DNA of 63,501 bases, filler included, from Salisapilia sapeloensis CBS 127946 (Eukaryota; Protista; Oomycota): NCBI GenBank assembly GCA_023334545.1. It is 6 parts of 6 records of this genome, joined end to end, with 100 filler letters (N's around TTAATTAATTAA, not from the genome) between each part and the next. Parts side by side here need not be neighbours in the genome. Positions count along the whole stretch, not along the records: positions 48,661 to 56,812 come from JAADVB010000497.1; 5 more parts are not named here. One strand, 5' to 3'. This document shows, one piece after another, positions 48,661 to 56,812 of the stretch. The position numbers and the translations under genes were made by a program. Under the pieces are notes generated by a model. The model was given only the letters and a program-made list of their open reading frames with translations, was not told the DNA's origin and did not search any database. The first letter of the stretch is position 1; the number at the start of each line of letters is the position of its first letter.

Positions 48661-48801
48661 CACCGATTGAAACGTGCGGTGCCAAATCTGCGTATCCTCT
48701 TTGCTACCAATCAGGCAATAGCTACCCATAATTTCAACCAATAAGAACATAGCACAAGGATAACTCTACAATCTGGCCTATGTGTGCCACACCCCGTGAC
48801 A
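48661..48801 (-). repeat. 3' LTR (partial, U3 portion)
   Basis: Ends in ..CCGTGACA, the inverted repeat of TGTCACGG at 56672. 48661-48696 is identical to 56777-56812. CCAAT boxes at 48707-48711 and 48738-48742. Confidence 0.9.
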
Positions 48802-48812
48802 CCACCCCCTCC
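48802..48812 (-). other. Polypurine tract
   Basis: Minus strand GGAGGGGGTGG directly abuts the 3' LTR start (TGTCACGG). Confidence 0.85.
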
Positions 48813-49002
48813 AAAACTGCGAACACACTCGCGAGCGAGCAGCGGTCTCCGCCGGCTTGCGCACCCTTCTTCCTAGTCTTCAAGCAATCGTCACCAGCAC
48901 CTTCTGGTGACGCTGGACCTTGTTGAGGCAATCCATTCGGCACGAGACTTGATATCGACACACTGGCGATATTCCAGGCGCTGACACGACCGCGCCACCT
49001 TC

Positions 49003-49008
49003 TCATTC
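49003..49008 (+). promoter_or_regulatory. INR-like element for the antisense ORF
   Basis: TCATTC (oomycete INR TCAYTY) about 40 nt upstream of ATG 49046; no clear FPR. Confidence 0.4.
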
Positions 49009-49045
49009 CTTGAATCGCATCACAACAAGCATCTCCACTCACGTC

Positions 49046-50743
49046 ATGGCAGACTCCAAGACTCCACACAACATCCCATCATCACAAGTTGAGTCGTCAG
49101 GGGCACAGGCACCCACAACTACGGACACAGACATCACTATGGCTTCGCCTCCGGCATCGACACACATGATGACCTCGGGCAACACAACCGAGGCTACTCA
49201 ATCCACCGTGAAAACTGGGGACGACGAAAAGAAGGCTCCGGCGCCGATAGATCCGGCGCCCCCGACATCGATGTCAAACCAAGCGACGCCACCTTCATCT
49301 GCTTCTTTGACTGTCGGTGGACAGCGATTGCCGTACGGTGAAGCCATACGAGGGTCACGCGAACTTTATGACCTGACGGGCGTAATCAATGCCCGTCCTC
49401 TTGATGAGATGCGAGACCTCTTTTGCCGATTTCGCCAGAGACGTGGCAAATCCATGTCAGCTAAAACAGCAAGCCTTCGTCAATCTTGGAACGCTTTCTG
49501 CGAGCGTTACAATTACGAGCCTGACATTGAAGCTGTGATCGAAGGATATGAGGCGTCGCGCGAGCGACGCGCCATAGGTCCTTTGCGCGACCAATGTCAT
49601 AACCATTGCTATGACGAACATCGGATCTGCTACACGCACATCGTCACTGGTTGTAGACGTTGTGAAGACGCCGGCATCCGGCGTCCGACGCTTGAAGACT
49701 GGGAGGAAGAAATACGGGTATACCCGCTGGACACACGCTTACAAACGAGTGTTAATCGGTTGAGCCGGGCTCTCCATGAAGCCCGCTCCTGGACGCCGCT
49801 CCGTCGACGTCGCTCTCGTCCTCGTAGTCCCGAACGACGTCGGGAACGTCCTCGCGAAGAGAGGAACCCGGTTCCCACGTATCCTGGCTCGGATCAAAGC
49901 CGAGCCAACGCACCCTATAGTAACGAGAGACGCTCGAGTCGTCGCCAGGACTCTTATGGCGACTACGACCACCGCCGCGACGACGAGCGCCCTTACGATC
50001 GCTACCTTCGGTATGACGATCCTCATGACCAACGATATGGTCCACGATCCAGCGACGATCGCCATTCCCGTCGAGAATCGGAGGTGGGCCACTACGGTGG
50101 AAGGCGCGGCGAGTACGATCAGTCGCGCCCCGCTTCTGGCGACTATCATGCGACCTATGGCTCGTATAGGCGCGATCGTTCTCGAAATCCTCCTCGCCCT
50201 CATGCCCAGACACCACCACGTGTGGCGTCCTCATCGCAGAATGCACCTGCGTCCTCGAGTGGACAACGGGGCTTCCAACTATACGCTCCCGTGAGGTTCT
50301 CGAACTTTCAGACACCAGCTGCTGCGGCACCGCAGTCGATGCCGGGACCCGCTGTCCCTGCTGCGCCTCCCTCGAGCTACCAGACGCCACCACGCGTGGC
50401 GTCACAACCTGCTGCTCCGTCCCTTGCTGCTCCGAATCCGCCATCGGCGACAGCGGAGCCCCCCGTTGTGCGACGAAGTGGTCTCCCAGAGTACTTTGAG
50501 GAGACCGATGAGCGTTCGAGGACGAATGCTGAGGAGATCGCGGACTTGGGGCTACGCGATGAGTACCGCGAGGCGGAGGTCCGGGGTCTTCGAGAGGCGC
50601 TCGCGCAAAGCCGCCAGAATCAACAACAGACGAATCAGAATCTTCGCCAGATGCGTGAGCGGCTTGCGAAGCTTGAAGCGCAGCTTGAGAGTTACGGGAA
50701 GTCCCGCGACGATTCACAGTCAAAGCAATCGAAGACGGACTAG
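49046..50743 (+). CDS. Retrotransposon-encoded antisense ORF (565 aa): Cys/His cluster, R/D/S-rich tract, C-terminal coiled coil; unknown function
   Basis: First ATG at 49046 (GTCATGG context), no stop until 50743. About 235 codons lie outside pol and about 330 overlap the pol 3' end. Confidence 0.7.
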   Translation: MADSKTPHNIPSSQVESSGAQAPTTTDTDITMASPPASTHMMTSGNTTEATQSTVKTGDDEKKAPAPIDPAPPTSMSNQATPPSSASLTVGGQRLPYGEAIRGSRELYDLTGVINARPLDEMRDLFCRFRQRRGKSMSAKTASLRQSWNAFCERYNYEPDIEAVIEGYEASRERRAIGPLRDQCHNHCYDEHRICYTHIVTGCRRCEDAGIRRPTLEDWEEEIRVYPLDTRLQTSVNRLSRALHEARSWTPLRRRRSRPRSPERRRERPREERNPVPTYPGSDQSRANAPYSNERRSSRRQDSYGDYDHRRDDERPYDRYLRYDDPHDQRYGPRSSDDRHSRRESEVGHYGGRRGEYDQSRPASGDYHATYGSYRRDRSRNPPRPHAQTPPRVASSSQNAPASSSGQRGFQLYAPVRFSNFQTPAAAAPQSMPGPAVPAAPPSSYQTPPRVASQPAAPSLAAPNPPSATAEPPVVRRSGLPEYFEETDERSRTNAEEIADLGLRDEYREAEVRGLREALAQSRQNQQQTNQNLRQMRERLAKLEAQLESYGKSRDDSQSKQSKTD

Positions 50744-53700
50744 CGGCTGACTCGTACCGTTTGAGACGACCTACATAAAATGTCGGATGTAGACGTATCG
50801 ACGATGGAAGGCTCAGCGTGTATGCTGAGCCGTGTTTCGCAGTCACTCTAAACGGCCCAATATAACGAGCGTTAATCTTTGCCGAGTCTGTCTGTCCAAG
50901 TGCTTGTGGGGGTAGTCCTGCTGTTGAAAGCAGGACGAAGTCGCCGGGTCGAAAGGACTCCATGGACCGGCGACCGTGTCGATCGGCGTTCTCCTTCTGC
51001 CGATCTACTGCTGACGCCACTGCGTCACGCACATACCGCAGGACTCCCTGCCGCGACTCAATCGCAGCGTCCGCTCTCCTCACCCCATGATCTTCCTGTT
51101 CTGGGGGTAGAGGGTCAAAGTTTCCCAGCGACGACTCGTTCATCGCATGTACTACTTGCGTGGTGTGGGCTCGTCCCACACCAGATGTGGACAGTTTATT
51201 GGACTCCACTGCGTCCACTCGAGGTGATTGCTCCCTAGCAACTCGAGTCTTGGGTGTCATAAGCGTCGATCCCTTCGACGCTCCCAAGACAGCATCTCGG
51301 TATGTCTTAGATGGGGTACCCAAAGACACGGCCCTTCCGTGTCCCTCGTCGCACACACTACGTGCGATAGGCTTTGTCCCTTCTTCATTATCACTGGGCT
51401 CATCAGCGATAACGTTCGTGTTTAGAGCTGCCTCGCTCAAGACAACGTCCTCGTTGTCTTCTCTGTGGCCACCACGTGTGGCTGTTTGCGACGCTTTTAT
51501 TTCCAGCTCTATTGTCGACATGGTCTGTGTTCCGCCGTCGATGTTAGAGTCACCGACGCGTTCGGTGACTTTGGAACTACGTCCTCGTACGTGTTCCGTT
51601 CTACCATAAGGTGACCCCTCATTGTCACTCTTAAAGGCGCCAGCCCGTCTGGCGCCGTCCACTTGCTTGATACGATTCGCACTATCTGACACCTCATTCG
51701 TGTCGATTTTCTCGTTATGTGTATCGTCAACAAGAGTAGACATCCCTTGTCCGGCGTCACCACATTCACTGGTGACTCGCATGCCGTGCACGCGTGCAGA
51801 TCTCTTCCTGTTGGCCCTCGTGCCATCAGACACGTTGCCAGCCCGTCTGGCAACTGGAGTGTCTGCATTGCGCGGTATTGTCGAAGCAGGTTGCGTCGCG
51901 GAATGCGGCGTCTGTGAGGTATTGTCCGCAGATGACGTCGGTAATTCCGACGTCCGCTGTTGACTTGCAGACTGGTTCGACGACGATGTCGCTGCTTGCG
52001 ACGTCTCTCCCCCTCCTAAATGAGAACCACGCGTGTTCGGGAGACCGAGTACTGATGGAACACGCGGGTGGCGCGCGTTGTTCACGAAGAAGGGGGTTTC
52101 ACCAGTGGATGAATGCGGGCTATTATTCATTGCGAACTCGGCCATGGGGAGAAGTTCGCTCCATGACTTGTAGCTGGTGGTATAGCTCCGCAGAATATCC
52201 TCTAGCGTGCGATTCACACGCTCCGTTTGTCCATCCGTCTCGGGATGGGCTGCCGTGGACATATCCAGGCGGGTTCCAAGGCGTCGGAACAACCGACGCC
52301 AAAACGAAGAGGTGAATCGGGGATCACGGTCTGAGACAATGCTCTCAGGCAAACCGTGATGTCGGAAGACGACGTCCAAAAAGATCTCAGCAGACTCTTC
52401 TGCTGAGACTGTCGCCTTCACCGGCGCAAGGTGAACCATCTTGCTCAGTCGATCAACAAAGACCAAGACACCCGTACGACCAAGCTTATCAGCGGGTAGT
52501 CCAAAGATGAAGTCCATACTAACGGATTGCCAAACGTCACTGGGTACTGGCAATGGTTGTAGGGGCGCCTGCATTGCAGGTGCCGACTTCACTCGCTGAC
52601 AAGTCTCACACGTTCGCACCCATTTGCGAACCCACTTGTACATGTGTGGCCAGTAGTACTCACGAGAAAGCATATTGTATGTCTTTTCTCGTCCGAAATG
52701 ACCAGCAGTGGGAGAGTCGTGGAACTCGTGTATGATGCGAGCCCGGAGATCATTATCGTTTGGTATGACCACTCGTGGAGTATCGAGTTGATCGATGCGA
52801 TAGTACAGCAAATTGTCCTGTACCGCGTAGCGAGATAAGCGCGAGTTCACTCGCCCCGACAACTTCTTCTTAGCTGCCTCGCTAGGCGATTTCAGATATC
52901 GCATGATCGACGAGCAGAACTCGTCCTCTTCATACGCCTGTCGAATTTCATCAAACAAGGAGAGACGCGGGGTGACCCGCGTCGCATTCACATCCTCTGT
53001 AGGACACTTTGGACATGGCGAAGACTCGTATTCTCCATCAGACTTCGGGTCGTAGTCGGGTCGACGGCTCAAAGCATCAGCAATGATGTTCATCTTGCCC
53101 GGTTTGTAGAACACTACAAAGTTGTATTGTGAGAAGAATGAAAGCCATCGAGCCATTCGATCGCTCAGATGCGGAGACTTGGTCGCTGTCCGCAGCGACG
53201 CATGGTCCGTATAAATAACGAACCGCTCCTCACCCAAGAGATATACTCGGAATTTGACCAAGGCATATCGCATTGCCAGAAGTTCCTTGTCATGAACCGG
53301 ATAATTCCGTTCTGCCGGTTTCAGTTGTCGTGATTGATAACTCACGACCCGTTCACGCCCATCGTCATCGTGTTGCATTAAAGCACACCCGATGGCAAAA
53401 TCACTGGCGTCGCATACGACATGGAACGGCTTCTCGTAGTTTGGCAATGTCAACACCGGCGCCTCTTGAAGACTTTTTTTCACAGCATCAAACGCTTTTT
53501 GATGCTCGGGCGTCCATTCCCATTCGACGTCTTTCTTCAACAACCGCGTTAGCGGTTGTACCAACGCTGCATAATTCTTCGTGTACTTATGCAGATAGTT
53601 CGCCAGTCCCATCCACTGGCGAAGGGCCTTTTGTGTCTTCGGAACAGGCCAATTACAAATGGTGGCAACCTTTTCCGGATCAGGACGACATCCGTCCTTA

Positions 53701-55624
53701 CTGACATAGCAACCAAGCACCGGGATCTCCGGTGCACAGAAGACACACTTCTTCAGCCTAGCATATAATTTGTTATCACGCATGGCTGTAAACACCTTCC
53801 GAAGGTGTTCAAGGTGGACATCCACCTCAGACTTTGTCTTCGACTTCTTACTGTGCACGAAGATATCATCAAAATAACACGGTGCAAAGTCACGATGTGG
53901 TCGCAACACTTGCGACACTACCCGGTTAAAGGTTGCCGGCGCGTTTCTCAAGCCCATCGGCATGACCAGCCACTCCCAGAGCATACCACTGGGGGTACTC
54001 ACGGCAGTTAGAGGGATATCACTCTCCCTCATAAGGACTTGATAGAACCCATCCATCAAGTCAATCGTACTGAAGATAGTACTCCCTGACATGGCATCTA
54101 AGATCATGTCCTTCCTGGGAATCGGCGTTTGCGCCGGTACCGTAGCATCGTTCAACTTATTGTACGCATGTACGATACGCCACCCTCCAGTGGCCTTTTT
54201 AACACAAAACGTTGGTGTTGAGTGTGGTGAGGAACTCTCACGCACATGGCCTGCCTTGCGGCGACCCTCGAAGAAATCGTCAATGGCCTTGACTTGTTCT
54301 CTCGGTAGCGGCCACTGCCGCGTCACACAATATTTGCTCCCAGGCACGAGATCGATCTCGTGCCGCACGCCACGATCTGGCGGTAACTTTTCCGGTACCT
54401 GCTCCGGGAATATATCACGAAATTCCCAGGCCAACTTGTATACCGGATTCCCCGAGGCCTTTAGCGCTTCCCATGACTGTGAGTCAAAGCGCTCCTCTTT
54501 GGCCGTCTTTGGAGGGGCGTCAGCCACTGCTGACGTCGACGGAGATTCCTTGATGGAGCACACTTGCTCGATACCATCATTTCGTAGGCTATCCAGGAAT
54601 CCGTCAAAACTCATCTCTTTGAGTTGGGTGATCTCATTCGCTAGACACGGCGGATCCTCAAGCCGTGTCGTCAACCTCACTGACCCCTCTTCCATGTGAG
54701 TAATCACCTCAATCTCGTTAGCATCGGACACGGCATTCACTCGTGTCGACACTCGCCCCTTGGAAGGAGTACCCTTTACTCGCTTCCTGTTCGACGCAGA
54801 CACTCCCTTAACATCACCACGTGTGGTGTTTTTCCGCGTCGGAACTTGCGACTCTGTGGTCGTTTCTTCAATCCCATCGTCTTCTTCCCGGAGAGCTGCA
54901 AACCGATTTTGCGAACCCTCAGACGATGATACAGTGTTAGCGCGATCATCGCGCTTTCGCTGACGTTTAGTCTGTCGGATAGACTGAGACGTAGCGGTCG
55001 ATGCAGGTTTACTTACGGGGCCATCGCTCTCTGTAGCAAAACTGTCTCGTGAGGAAGGATTGAACGTATTAACTACTCGGACATGACGCCATGTACCTGG
55101 CGCCTTGCGAAGCGACGCGCATACCTGATCCACATTCAGGCCTCGCTTCTTATGTACCGATCTCGTTAACCAATCGATACTTGGACGATGGCGGCGCAGC
55201 CATGGCATCCCAAGAATGACATCAAACTTTTGATCGAGTTCCACCGCAAGGAACGCGTCTTCACTCTTGTAGCCATCGAAACTGTACCGTACAGTCACCG
55301 TTCGCCGCGGGACCTCCCGCGGCTTCCCATCCGCATATCGAAGTGAGATACGTTCACTTCCTTCCCTGATAAGGGTGCCTTTCGGCAAAAGACGTAAACT
55401 CTGTGCGCGAATGAAGTTATTCGTCGCGCCAGTGTCTACGAGGGCATGAAGAGGTTGCTTCATGCCAGGTACGTGGAGGTCAATGACTAAAAGTCGATTG
55501 TCACCACGCGTTGTTGTGGCGAATAAACACGCTGGGCGTGGTTCGAGGCCAGGTGTCTGAGGTGCCACATCCCTCAGACTACTTCGCTGACCAGTAGGGG
55601 GCCTCGCGCCTACTGGTCTTCCAC
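49752..55624 (-). CDS. pol: Pol polyprotein (PR, RT, RNase H, integrase, chromodomain), probably expressed by -1 frameshift
   Basis: PR LVDTGA; RT WRIVHAYNKLN..IDLMDGFYQ..YFDD; RH DASDFAIG; IN HHCC and D-D-E (SMDF, SDRD, QTER); IGPF; chromodomain WIVDHIV..YYRVRWLGFDPSQDTWEP. The frame is open upstream of the listed GTG back to ~55637. Confidence 0.93.
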
Positions 55625-55631
55625 ATTTGGG
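55589..55631 (-). promoter_or_regulatory. Putative -1 programmed ribosomal frameshift signal
   Basis: Slippery heptamer C CCA AAU (55631-55625) in the gag frame, a 6-nt spacer, then the stem-loop GACCAGUAGG/CCUACUGGUC (55618-55589). Pol is in the -1 frame. Confidence 0.8.
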
Positions 55632-56638
55632 GAAGACCTAGTATCACCCTCCTCAACCGTATTGAGGGTGACGGGCACTGGTGCTCGGCAATCGCGAGCA
55701 TAGTGTCCCTTCTTTTGGCAACGGAAGCACGTAACTTGCTTCGACCTATTCGAAGTTGGCTTCCTCTGTCTGCTCTGACCCGTCGTCAGAGCGTCAACGA
55801 CCATTGGTTCGGGACCGCCTTGTCCCGGCATATTGCCGAGCCACTTCGGTAACTGACTTTCGTAGGCCTGGCGCTCCGTGAAGTCTTCTTCTAGCGCCAG
55901 GCGGATTGCTTCTTCGAGTGTGTTCGGGCGGCGACGGAACAGTTCCTTCTTGACTGGCCCGTTGTGGAGGCCCTGAATGAAGAGCAATACCTGAGTCGTG
56001 GTGTCCAACGGTGCGTGGCGTAGACACGAGACCATGTATCGAACCTTTTGACAATAGTCATTAAGGTTCAAGTTCCCTTGTTGAGCGCGCAGGAGTTCAG
56101 AACGAATACGAAGCTCGTTCTCCGGTGGTTCGAACGTTAACTCAAGTTCACGCTTGAGCTCCTCAAGCGTTGGGAAAGCGGACGGGTCGGCAAGTCGCCG
56201 ACCATAGGCCCAATTCTTGGCCTGATCCTTTAGGCAAGACATGGTAAATGCCACCTGCAGGAAAGGATCGCTGATATTACGAGCAGCGATAGCCGTGTCC
56301 ACTTCCACGAACCAGCGCTGGAGAGGCATTTCTCCAGCGCCTCCATACGTGGAGACAGGAATCTTCAAGAACCCCGAGGAACTTCTCGGGGCCGTGTTCG
56401 TTGCGGCCCTTGCCGCAACCGCTTCTGACTGGAGCCACTCGACCGCCGCCTTTCGGTGGTCATCCTCCGTACCGTATTCGAGGAGAATACTTAACGCGCT
56501 GTTCCCAGCATGCTGCTGCATGCGAACTAGTGCGTTCCATTCGATCTCACCTAAGTGAGGGTACATGGAGTGGTCAAAAACATTTCCCTGTGGGGGCGCC
56601 GCACCCGCAGCTGACTCGTTCGCTGCTGGGTCCGCCAT
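55610..56638 (-). CDS. gag: Gag protein with CCHC zinc knuckle
   Basis: 342 aa. Retrotransposon gag core (WFVEVDTAI..AKNWAY..FEPP..Y..QGL..GPVK..LFR..PNTLEEAI..A), PEPMVVD, and CFRCQKKGHYARDC. Confidence 0.92.
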   Translation of the reverse strand: MADPAANESAAGAAPPQGNVFDHSMYPHLGEIEWNALVRMQQHAGNSALSILLEYGTEDDHRKAAVEWLQSEAVAARAATNTAPRSSSGFLKIPVSTYGGAGEMPLQRWFVEVDTAIAARNISDPFLQVAFTMSCLKDQAKNWAYGRRLADPSAFPTLEELKRELELTFEPPENELRIRSELLRAQQGNLNLNDYCQKVRYMVSCLRHAPLDTTTQVLLFIQGLHNGPVKKELFRRRPNTLEEAIRLALEEDFTERQAYESQLPKWLGNMPGQGGPEPMVVDALTTGQSRQRKPTSNRSKQVTCFRCQKKGHYARDCRAPVPVTLNTVEEGDTRSSPNVEDQ

Positions 56639-56656
56639 TTACAGTGGAAATAACCA

Positions 56657-56669
56657 CCAAGTGCTACCA
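56657..56669 (-). other. Primer-binding site
   Basis: Minus strand TGGTAGCACTTGG, 2 nt after the LTR end. It is complementary to a tRNA 3' end ..GUGCUACCA (initiator-Met-like by inference). Confidence 0.8.
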
Positions 56670-56671
56670 GG

Positions 56672-56812
56672 TGTCACGGCTACTCGATCGGTGACTATTC
56701 CACTTAGCGTAGGGGAAGTTCGCTAGTTTTAAGCCAAATCAGAAGTGATTGTATTTACCCTTTTATGTTCTAGAGGCACCGATTGAAACGTGCGGTGCCA
56801 AATCTGCGTATC
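56672..56812 (-). repeat. 5' LTR (partial, R-U5 side)
   Basis: On + it begins TGTCACGG and runs into the linker. The last 36 nt duplicate 48661-48696. The reconstructed LTR is 246 bp. Confidence 0.9.
56735..56748 (-). promoter_or_regulatory. INR+FPR-like core promoter in the LTR
   Basis: Minus strand TCACTTCTGATTTG matches TCAYTYBNNNWTTY at 13 of 14 positions, about 108 nt upstream of the gag ATG. Confidence 0.55.

Follow-up and report, generated by a model that had tools for sequence, protein, structure and literature searches.

An open reading frame (ORF) of 565 codons that lies antisense to the 3' end of pol in a retrotransposon of the oomycete Salisapilia sapeloensis CBS 127946 (GenBank assembly GCA_023334545.1) is, judging by comparison with related elements, very probably a real, selected and dual-coded protein gene of an oomycete chromovirus clade. 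The window, by which we mean the whole stretch of DNA that was analysed, comprises 63,501 nucleotides (nt) in six joined parts of this genome, and one of these parts (positions 48661-56812, from JAADVB010000497.1) consists of a single, intact Ty3/Gypsy chromovirus on the minus strand. The antisense gene (asORF) occupies 49046-50743 on the plus strand, stop codon included. The initial annotation of this DNA had proposed an antisense accessory protein that shares its DNA with the 3' end of pol, a proposal now supported by the protein family, by synteny and phase, by selection and by the avoidance of stop codons. On a wider scale, we regard it as probable that this is an ancient antisense overlapping gene found throughout the clade (Phytophthora, Nothophytophthora, Pythium, Globisporangium and the organism of the window), with coding partitioned between the two strands and with a new fold.

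The plus-strand frame is open back to 49010 (TTG), its first ATG is at 49046, with G at both -3 and +4, and its stop codon is at 50741-50743. The ATG lies 245 nt inside the edge of the long terminal repeat (LTR) and 706 nt before the stop of pol (49752-55568, minus strand; 1938 amino acids, aa; ORF list and Pfam). Hence 235 codons [(49752-49046)/3] fall outside pol, while 992 nt (~330 codons, ~58% of the ORF) overlap it, spanning the pol tail, the chromodomain (Pfam Chromo, 49818-49934, minus strand, pol aa 1879-1917) and the entire linker up to the integrase SH3 domain (Pfam SH3_Tf2-1, 50754-50945, minus strand, pol aa 1542-1605), with the stop 11 nt from the end of that domain. Because 49046 and 55568 both equal 2 modulo 3, antisense codon positions 1, 2 and 3 face pol positions 1, 3 and 2. 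The long ORF antisense to pol, its start about 245 nt inside the LTR edge, its division into some 235 pol-free and 330 overlapping codons and its phase had all been described in the initial annotation, and they agree with the ORF list, the branch of the assembly graph at 48801, the coordinates and the phase arithmetic, respectively. A start within the LTR itself is ruled out, as the graph branch sets the LTR edge at 48801. In the arrangement that we propose, the first part of the gene would fill the stretch from the 3' LTR to the stop of pol, and the remainder would run on the opposite strand of the chromodomain and the linker to end near SH3.

The encoded protein (overall isoelectric point, pI, 9.1) would be modular, and the Pro/Thr-rich N-terminus, helical segment, Cys/His cluster, Arg- and Ser-, Asp- or Tyr-rich tract and C-terminal helix that had been read from it at the outset are all present. 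The disordered Pro/Thr/Ser-rich N-terminus (49046-49357, +; aa 1-104, pI 4.8; predicted local distance difference test, pLDDT, <50 in AlphaFold2) differs in length and sequence between homologs. It is followed by a conserved helical domain of ~145 residues (49358-49789, +; aa 105-248), delimited by a phmmer family, an alignment and an AlphaFold2 model, which overlaps pol by no more than its final 38 nt (49752-49789), at the end of the pol ORF. Within this domain, the Cys/His cluster CHNHCYDEHRICYTHIVTGCRRC (49595-49663, +; aa 184-206) is a putative zinc site. An Arg/Ser-rich basic tract (49790-49945, +; aa 249-300, pI 12) lies opposite the chromodomain, and its NPVPTYP (49865-49885, +) is the reverse reading of chromodomain residues DTWEPGS (49863-49883). 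Next comes a disordered region, R/D/Y-rich and then Pro/Ala-rich (49946-50488, +; aa 301-481), opposite the linker between SH3 and chromodomain, and a long C-terminal helix predicted by AlphaFold2, a putative coiled coil (50489-50719, +; aa 482-558), which faces the beginning of the linker in pol. The disordered region, and with it the linker, is about two-fold longer in the window than in two of the related elements described below (L001 and L003), as if by duplication. QTPPRVAS is encoded twice in the asORF by direct repeats at 50210-50228 and 50384-50402, and a YQTPPRV-like motif also occurs twice in one homolog (P0073).

Protein family and synteny in related elements

Homologs were found when aa 1-248 were compared by phmmer with 1.84 billion representative sequences, which gave 69 matches at E<1e-3, 16 of them at E<1e-10 and the best at 2.5e-25, all aligning to aa ~105-247. 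The named homologs are 'hypothetical proteins' of Phytophthora infestans (PITG_13482), P. nicotianae, P. cactorum, P. fragariae, P. rubi, P. capsici, P. oleae, P. idaei, Pythium insidiosum and Nothophytophthora. With the full 565-aa protein as query, a word-indexed search returned nothing, the candidate list having probably been filled by low-complexity words; the protein matched no Pfam family at E<=0.1, and 21 homologs compared with Pfam gave nothing except one weak coiled-coil match. We aligned 41 sequences of the domain (alignment A2) and built a hidden Markov model (HMM) from them, which recognises the window ORF at E=2.2e-50 and, of the fetched loci, all but one from Globisporangium (L002). 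Near-invariant in the alignment are R128, K135, L144, W148, R154, W155 (Y in the window), N156, E169, L180 and W219. In the cluster, position 185 is C in 29 sequences, H in 10 and Y in 2, and C195, C203 and C206 are found in 39, 37 and 36 of the 41; the window has H185, C195, C203 and C206, which fits the conserved C/H-x(9-10)-C-x7-C-x2-C positions of the putative zinc site. A metagenome search with the pattern SWxAF[ICV][KER]R[WY]N (A4) returned 28 stretches, none upheld by tblastn. On this sequence evidence, the helical C/H-C-C-C domain is a new, unnamed family, that of an oomycete chromovirus antisense protein.

AlphaFold2, run on the alignment, predicts an eight-helix domain with a mean pLDDT of 93.9, so that the region singled out in the initial annotation for structure prediction has a confident helical fold. 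In the model of the full-length protein, residues 1-100 are disordered, 105-250 folded, 255-480 disordered and 482-558 a single helix (pLDDT 83-94), in which Q524 and R534 are nearly invariant among full-length homologs. Prediction of a homodimer from two copies of aa 478-565 gave a score of 0.25 against a mark of 0.32, which counts neither for nor against a dimer. Searches with the domain returned nothing above background, whether by Foldseek against the PDB (best E 4.6), against the ESM Atlas (best TM 0.40), by VIA-align against 48161 chains (best Z 5.1 over 57 residues), against BFVD (best E 0.81) or by sequence profile against the PDB (best E 1.2), and the Protein Atlas, searched by features, held nothing usable for it. 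The modelled fold thus appears to have no known match in the PDB, BFVD and ESM Atlas searches, which is not proof of a new fold.

To place the gene in its relatives, DNA was fetched around homologs and around relatives of pol, and placement was made by tblastn and HMM searches. At seven of the eight independent homolog loci the gene is antisense, beside or overlapping the chromodomain end of pol. These are a Logan contig (L001) with an intact gag, a 1741-aa pol and an antisense ORF of 437 codons, and loci of P. capsici (L003, L010), Pythium insidiosum (L005), P. oleae (L006), a metagenome scaffold (L007), P. idaei (L008/L009) and P. rubi / P. fragariae (L011-L014); the Nothophytophthora locus (L004) has no pol nearby. 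Full-length members share the domain, the Arg/Ser-rich tract, an AP(T/M)YP motif and the C-terminal helix with its near-invariant Q and R. Since NPVPTYP of the window is DTWEPGS of the chromodomain read in reverse, the AP(T/M)YP motif found across the family is an imprint of the chromodomain, and the phase between the two genes has therefore stayed constant. Where the gene is full length it ends close to SH3: the antisense stop lies at most 4 codons from the Pfam SH3 boundary in the window, L001 and L003, and within a few codons of it in four lineages.

Globisporangium splendens (L002) extends this arrangement. An antisense ORF of 388 codons, overlapping the pol linker and the chromodomain, occupies the same place in the same phase, with its stop 8 codons from the SH3 end, APTC opposite DTWEP, and a coiled coil of ~170 residues; the antisense ORFs at this locus lie at 8990-10156 (+) and 3629-4129 (-). 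These elements do not match the domain HMM, and their N-terminus bears only a weak resemblance to the family profile (hhalign E=0.004 over 54 columns). Since they are syntenic and in phase although the profile match is weak, the antisense-overlap arrangement is wider than the family that the HMM can detect.

Three observations on individual relatives may be added. In Nothophytophthora sp. Chile5 (L004:9878-11662, protein P0058), a homolog of the domain stands among NDK, PH-domain and SET-domain genes, fused in one uninterrupted ORF of 588 codons to an unrelated C-terminal half that is not of low complexity, and with 'APVY' left over from the overlap with the chromodomain; this copy may have been domesticated or may be a chimera. 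At L001:6038-6353, the pol ORF continues for ~105 codons beyond the chromodomain into the domain region of the antisense gene, and since omega (the ratio of nonsynonymous to synonymous substitution rates) is ~3 there in pol phase, this tail is apparently no genuine part of pol but a run-on free of selection. Finally, a decayed related element and its flanks are 97.3% identical between P. rubi and P. fragariae (L011:771-6222 versus L013:1545-6979), which, on the sequence of element and flanks, is an orthologous insertion that predates the split of the two species; these decayed copies are annotated as a 'hypothetical protein' of 427 or 318 aa.

Selection on the two strands and rival explanations

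To assess whether the frame could be open by chance, the two halves of the gene were treated separately. When the 706-nt non-overlapping part was shuffled, an open stretch of at least 235 codons in any of the six frames appeared in 2 of 20000 trials. For the overlap, the amino acids of pol were kept fixed, synonymous codons were resampled under two codon usages and antisense stops were counted. With the codon usage of the rest of pol, 5.2 stops are expected and none is observed (0.34% of resamplings stop-free, P=0.003); with the segment's own usage, 7.8 are expected and again none is observed (<0.02% stop-free, P<0.0002). Relatives with a long antisense ORF show the same avoidance under the two usages (L001, P=0.014 and 0.005; L003, P=0.0002 and 0.002), and across the three elements 4-8 stops are expected from synonymous resampling where none is found. 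Chance is excluded for both the non-overlapping and the overlapping halves.

As antisense position 3 coincides with position 2 of pol, and antisense position 2 with position 3 of pol, the frame under constraint can be told from the codon position that varies most. We counted differences at antisense positions 1/2/3 in L001 versus L011 (75.6% nt identity), L003 versus L008 (71.6%) and the two Globisporangium copies (95.6%). In the part of the domain outside pol, the third antisense position varies most (12/7/30 in L001 versus L011, antisense omega 0.225; 5/5/13 in the Globisporangium copies), as it does in the second half of the domain together with the Arg/Ser-rich tract (27/16/45 in L001 versus L011, with an omega of 0.25 in the antisense frame and 3.1 in pol phase). 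Opposite the chromodomain it is the second position that varies most, with 15/35/14 in L001 versus L011 (antisense omega 1.63, pol phase 0.28), 11/51/20 in L003 versus L008 and 2/3/1 in Globisporangium. Across the linker and coiled coil the third position leads again, with 26/28/50 (antisense omega 0.36, pol phase 1.41), 25/11/42 and, as small position counts only, 6/3/8 in the same three comparisons, and the coiled coil by itself gives 7/11/28 in L001 versus L011 (antisense omega 0.22, pol phase 1.9). The adjacent SH3 domain, which is pol only, shows the pattern of the chromodomain (23/39/16 in L003 versus L008; 9/16/4 in Globisporangium). As a neutral control, the orthologous dead copies L011 and L013 differ by 4/4/5 in the domain; this pair (97.3%) and L003/L010 (95.8%) are too close or post-insertional to report selection on active lineages. 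Between distant pairs, amino acid identity in the domain is 0.35-0.40 in the antisense frame versus 0.10-0.22 in pol phase, and in the coiled coil of L001 and L003 it is 0.28 versus 0.14.

The substitution patterns in these relatives show that pol governs the chromodomain and SH3, and that the antisense gene governs its own domain and the pol linker. The tolerant, disordered segment of each protein is thereby shown to lie opposite the structured segment of the other. We propose that the chromodomain dictates the sequence opposite to it, where the antisense protein would carry a tolerant Arg/Ser-rich tract, and that the antisense gene dictates the sequence of the linker, where pol would need only a spacer. 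The initial annotation had remarked that the pol linker looked as if it accommodated this gene, and indeed the antisense frame, not that of pol, is selected in the linker of relatives; conservation across relatives, by which it proposed to judge the ORF, takes the form of purifying selection in the antisense frame, with omega of 0.22-0.36 in the domain, linker and coiled coil.

Among the rival explanations, one holds that only the non-overlapping N-terminal domain is functional, the extension of 330 codons being a run-on in a stop-poor, low-complexity, GC-rich frame. This would account for the antisense omega of 1.63 opposite the chromodomain in L001 versus L011, for the many annotated homologs that are short and end just past the zone opposed to the chromodomain, and for the predicted disorder in the middle of the protein. 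It does not fit the linker and coiled coil, where in the two diverged element pairs antisense omega is 0.22-0.36 and that of pol phase exceeds 1, and where the Globisporangium pair repeats the position pattern, in small counts; nor does it fit the avoidance of stops in three elements, the stop codon kept near the SH3 boundary in four lineages or the near-invariance of Q524 and R534 in the C-terminal helix. A run-on is distinctly improbable.

A second rival would see the functional product in an antisense RNA that forms double-stranded RNA with the genomic transcript and tunes silencing or copy number, the ORF being secondary or untranslated. Over at least 1 kilobase, such a transcript would be the complement of the element's genomic RNA, other retroelements have antisense RNAs that are non-coding (PMC7264820), and the protein is here predicted from sequence. 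The three-base periodicity and low antisense omega, on the other hand, indicate selection on a protein and not only on an RNA, and the domain is confidently predicted (pLDDT 93.9) and has conserved Cys, Trp and Arg columns; an RNA as the sole product seems distinctly improbable. The two roles are compatible, and an antisense RNA role may coexist with that of the protein.

That the ORF is no lasting component of the element, and is instead a gene of the host or a fragment of a different element that became nested in this copy by transduction or insertion, is very improbable. The Nothophytophthora homolog among ordinary genes, away from any pol, would be its best witness, but the same antisense position and phase recur across genera in which pol is only 55-70% identical, and the motif opposite the chromodomain DTWEP is common to the whole family; the Nothophytophthora protein keeps the AP(V)Y remnant of the overlap, which suggests that it derives from an element rather than the other way round. 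Least tenable of all is a chance or shadow ORF with no gene behind it, for although antisense stops need pol dicodons in which NTT, NCT or NTC is followed by A, few of which occur where the pol tail is hydrophilic and of low complexity, homologs down to E 2.5e-25, a confident fold, 2 of 20000 shuffles, an omega of 0.22 and the avoidance of stops all contradict it, and for the domain part it is refuted by the family and selection evidence.

Several considerations weigh against the dual-coded protein gene that we prefer. The omega values were computed by NG86, which is not designed for overlapping frames, from tens of substitutions per zone, and selection was measured on relatives, the window's own family apparently having one copy in its genome. 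Several homologs have only 170-320 aa and end soon after the chromodomain, which makes them either decayed copies or a sign that the C-terminal part is dispensable. The case as a whole is built on sequence comparison and predicted structure, the sole run that matches this stretch consisting of DNA contigs, with no RNA run among the matches, and the suggested function is drawn from composition and from a model without a fold match.

As to that function, we suggest only tentatively, from the modelled structure, that the product could be a nuclear, nucleic-acid-binding, oligomerising accessory factor. It would act on the element's own RNA, DNA/cDNA or chromatin and oligomerise through the C-terminal helix, and the antisense protein may be coupled to the targeting of integration, to the handling of RNA or to an escape from silencing. 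Its closest analogues in such a role would be the antisense accessory proteins of plant Tat/Retand elements and of deltaretroviruses. The RNA-binding, anti-silencing and targeting roles that the initial annotation had put forward are likewise conjectural.

The host element and a candidate antisense promoter

The element encodes, besides pol, a gag of 342 aa (55610-56638, minus strand; ORF list and Pfam) with a Retrotrans_gag match and a CCHC knuckle. Pfam matches in pol comprise a protease, RVT_1, RT_RNaseH, Integrase_H2C2, rve, SH3_Tf2-1 and Chromo, in the domain order of a chromovirus. The two ends of the piece (48661-48696 and 56777-56812) are an identical 36 nt, which means that the piece is not a linear locus and that one LTR plus the internal region (8116 base pairs, bp) were assembled as a collapsed circle. 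The edge of the LTR was read from the assembly graph of the only public run with matching DNA, which branches at 48801. A 246-nt unitig covering 48661-48801 has a depth of 75.7, the inward unitig from 48772 a depth of 46.1, and a third, of depth 39, exits at 48801 into an unrelated flank. From the branch and these depths, the LTR is 246 bp long (56672-56812 joined to 48697-48801), its inner part being 48697-48801 on the minus strand by end repeat, unitig graph and depth, and its termini read TGTCACGG...CCGTGACA. The depths of LTR, internal region and flank suggest a young insertion in single or low copy. Just inside the LTR lies a purine-rich tract (48802-48812, minus strand), and a candidate primer-binding site, TGGTAGCACTTGGTGG (56654-56669, minus strand), is recognised from its sequence, starting with TGG 2 nt past the LTR end.

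The pol protein is unusually long (1938 aa versus about 1500-1750) because of a low-complexity insertion of ~260 residues at aa 1221-1482 (51123-51908), between the integrase core and SH3. This insertion has no counterpart in relatives, tblastn alignments skipping across aa ~1221-1482, and no long antisense ORF lies opposite 51123-51908. The same genome contains at least one other, diverged Gypsy element, which matches only short conserved stretches of reverse transcriptase and integrase (52426-54332). Two other organisms of the same study likewise gave short conserved reverse transcriptase/integrase stretches only, the region of the antisense gene being absent at >=85% identity.

Upstream of the antisense ATG, the initial annotation had pointed to an initiator (INR)-like TCATTC at about 40 nt, which we find as the heptamer TCATTCC at 49003-49009 (+), 41 nt before the ATG and with no other ATG between. 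Of 9 independent relatives, 3 (the window, L005 and L011/L013) have such a heptamer in the 50 nt before the ATG, against a background of 0.23 per 200 nt. As a candidate start of antisense transcription, TCATTCC is suggestive only. The initial annotation had supposed that the 3' LTR drives the gene. The ATG, however, lies 245 nt within the internal region, the sole promoter-like element is this internal heptamer, and the mRNA would then start from an internal antisense promoter near 49005.

Comparison with known systems

Proteins of the SR class, which belong to the splicing machinery, carry one or two RNA recognition motifs (RRMs) followed by an Arg/Ser-rich (RS) domain. The window protein resembles them in its long disordered tract, rich in Arg/Ser and Arg/Asp/Glu and with a pI of about 12; Pfam finds no RRM or other RNA-binding domain in it, and the Arg/Ser-rich composition may be partly a by-product of the overlap, because the chromodomain dictates the sequence of this tract in relatives.

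Antisense proteins are also made by retroviruses, among them HBZ of HTLV-1 and ASP of HIV-1; HBZ is nuclear, arises from a transcript that begins in the 3' LTR and ends in a helix of the leucine-zipper type, and ASP overlaps the sense gene env on the opposite strand. With these, the asORF has in common that it is a minus-strand gene, relative to the genome of a reverse-transcribing element, near the 3' LTR. It shares with them no similarity of sequence or fold (no basic leucine zipper Pfam match is found in the window protein), and its partner in the overlap is the C-terminus of integrase with the chromodomain, not env or pX. Both HBZ and ASP are mentioned in two reviews of antisense ORFs in LTR retrotransposons (PMC7264820, PMC11963269).

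The element itself resembles the oomycete chromoviruses that have been surveyed (PMC5348765) in its gag with CCHC, its order of protease, reverse transcriptase, RNase H and integrase, its SH3_Tf2-1 and its C-terminal chromodomain, and differs from Chronos and Archon in that Pfam detects no extra RNase H of archaeal type. That survey of oomycete Gypsy elements mentions no antisense or additional ORF (PMC5348765), and in the literature we found no oomycete precedent and no mention of the locus tags of the homologs.

What is new here is the oomycete host, the chromovirus, the protein family, the location of more than half of the gene inside pol and the selection on both strands. Antisense ORFs of LTR retrotransposons are known, unexplained, in plants and a fungus, and none has been described as sharing DNA with pol; the present case is taxonomically separate, in a group that includes major pathogens of crops and animals, and lends itself well to the study of how eukaryotic mobile elements keep antisense overlapping genes. 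This gene accounts for the long, poorly conserved integrase linker of these elements, dozens of 'hypothetical proteins' of Phytophthora and Pythium become retrotransposon genes, and the HMM of the domain can serve as a marker for this chromovirus clade. If the protein does have a role in chromatin targeting or silencing, it would bear on the shaping of the transposon-rich, effector-bearing compartments of oomycete genomes.

The closest parallel is provided by the ORFs known as aORF-3R, which lie antisense between pol and the 3' LTR in maize Grande (gene23), rice RIRE2, Silene Retand (TRP28) and fungal Boty; in the plant elements their functions are unexplained and they are described as lying in the spacer from pol to LTR, and Grande is described as having, upstream of its ORF, an internal promoter that reads antisense (PMC7264820, PMC11963269). 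The window protein contains no TRP28 domain (Transposase_28, PF04195) in the Pfam search, gene23 itself not being among the sequences compared. The hosts differ, aORF-3R being found in plants and ascomycetes, in non-chromovirus elements of the Tat/Retand type, and the asORF in a chromovirus of an oomycete. The likeness lies in an accessory ORF opposite gag-pol, placed in the 3'-terminal part of the internal region and present throughout a lineage, without clear similarity to cellular proteins and with a suspected nuclear or regulatory role. The plant and Boty ORFs lie in a long spacer, and the word 'overlap' is absent from both reviews, whereas the window ORF begins between pol and the 3' LTR as the plant ORFs do and then continues into pol, with more than half of its length on the opposite strand of that gene.

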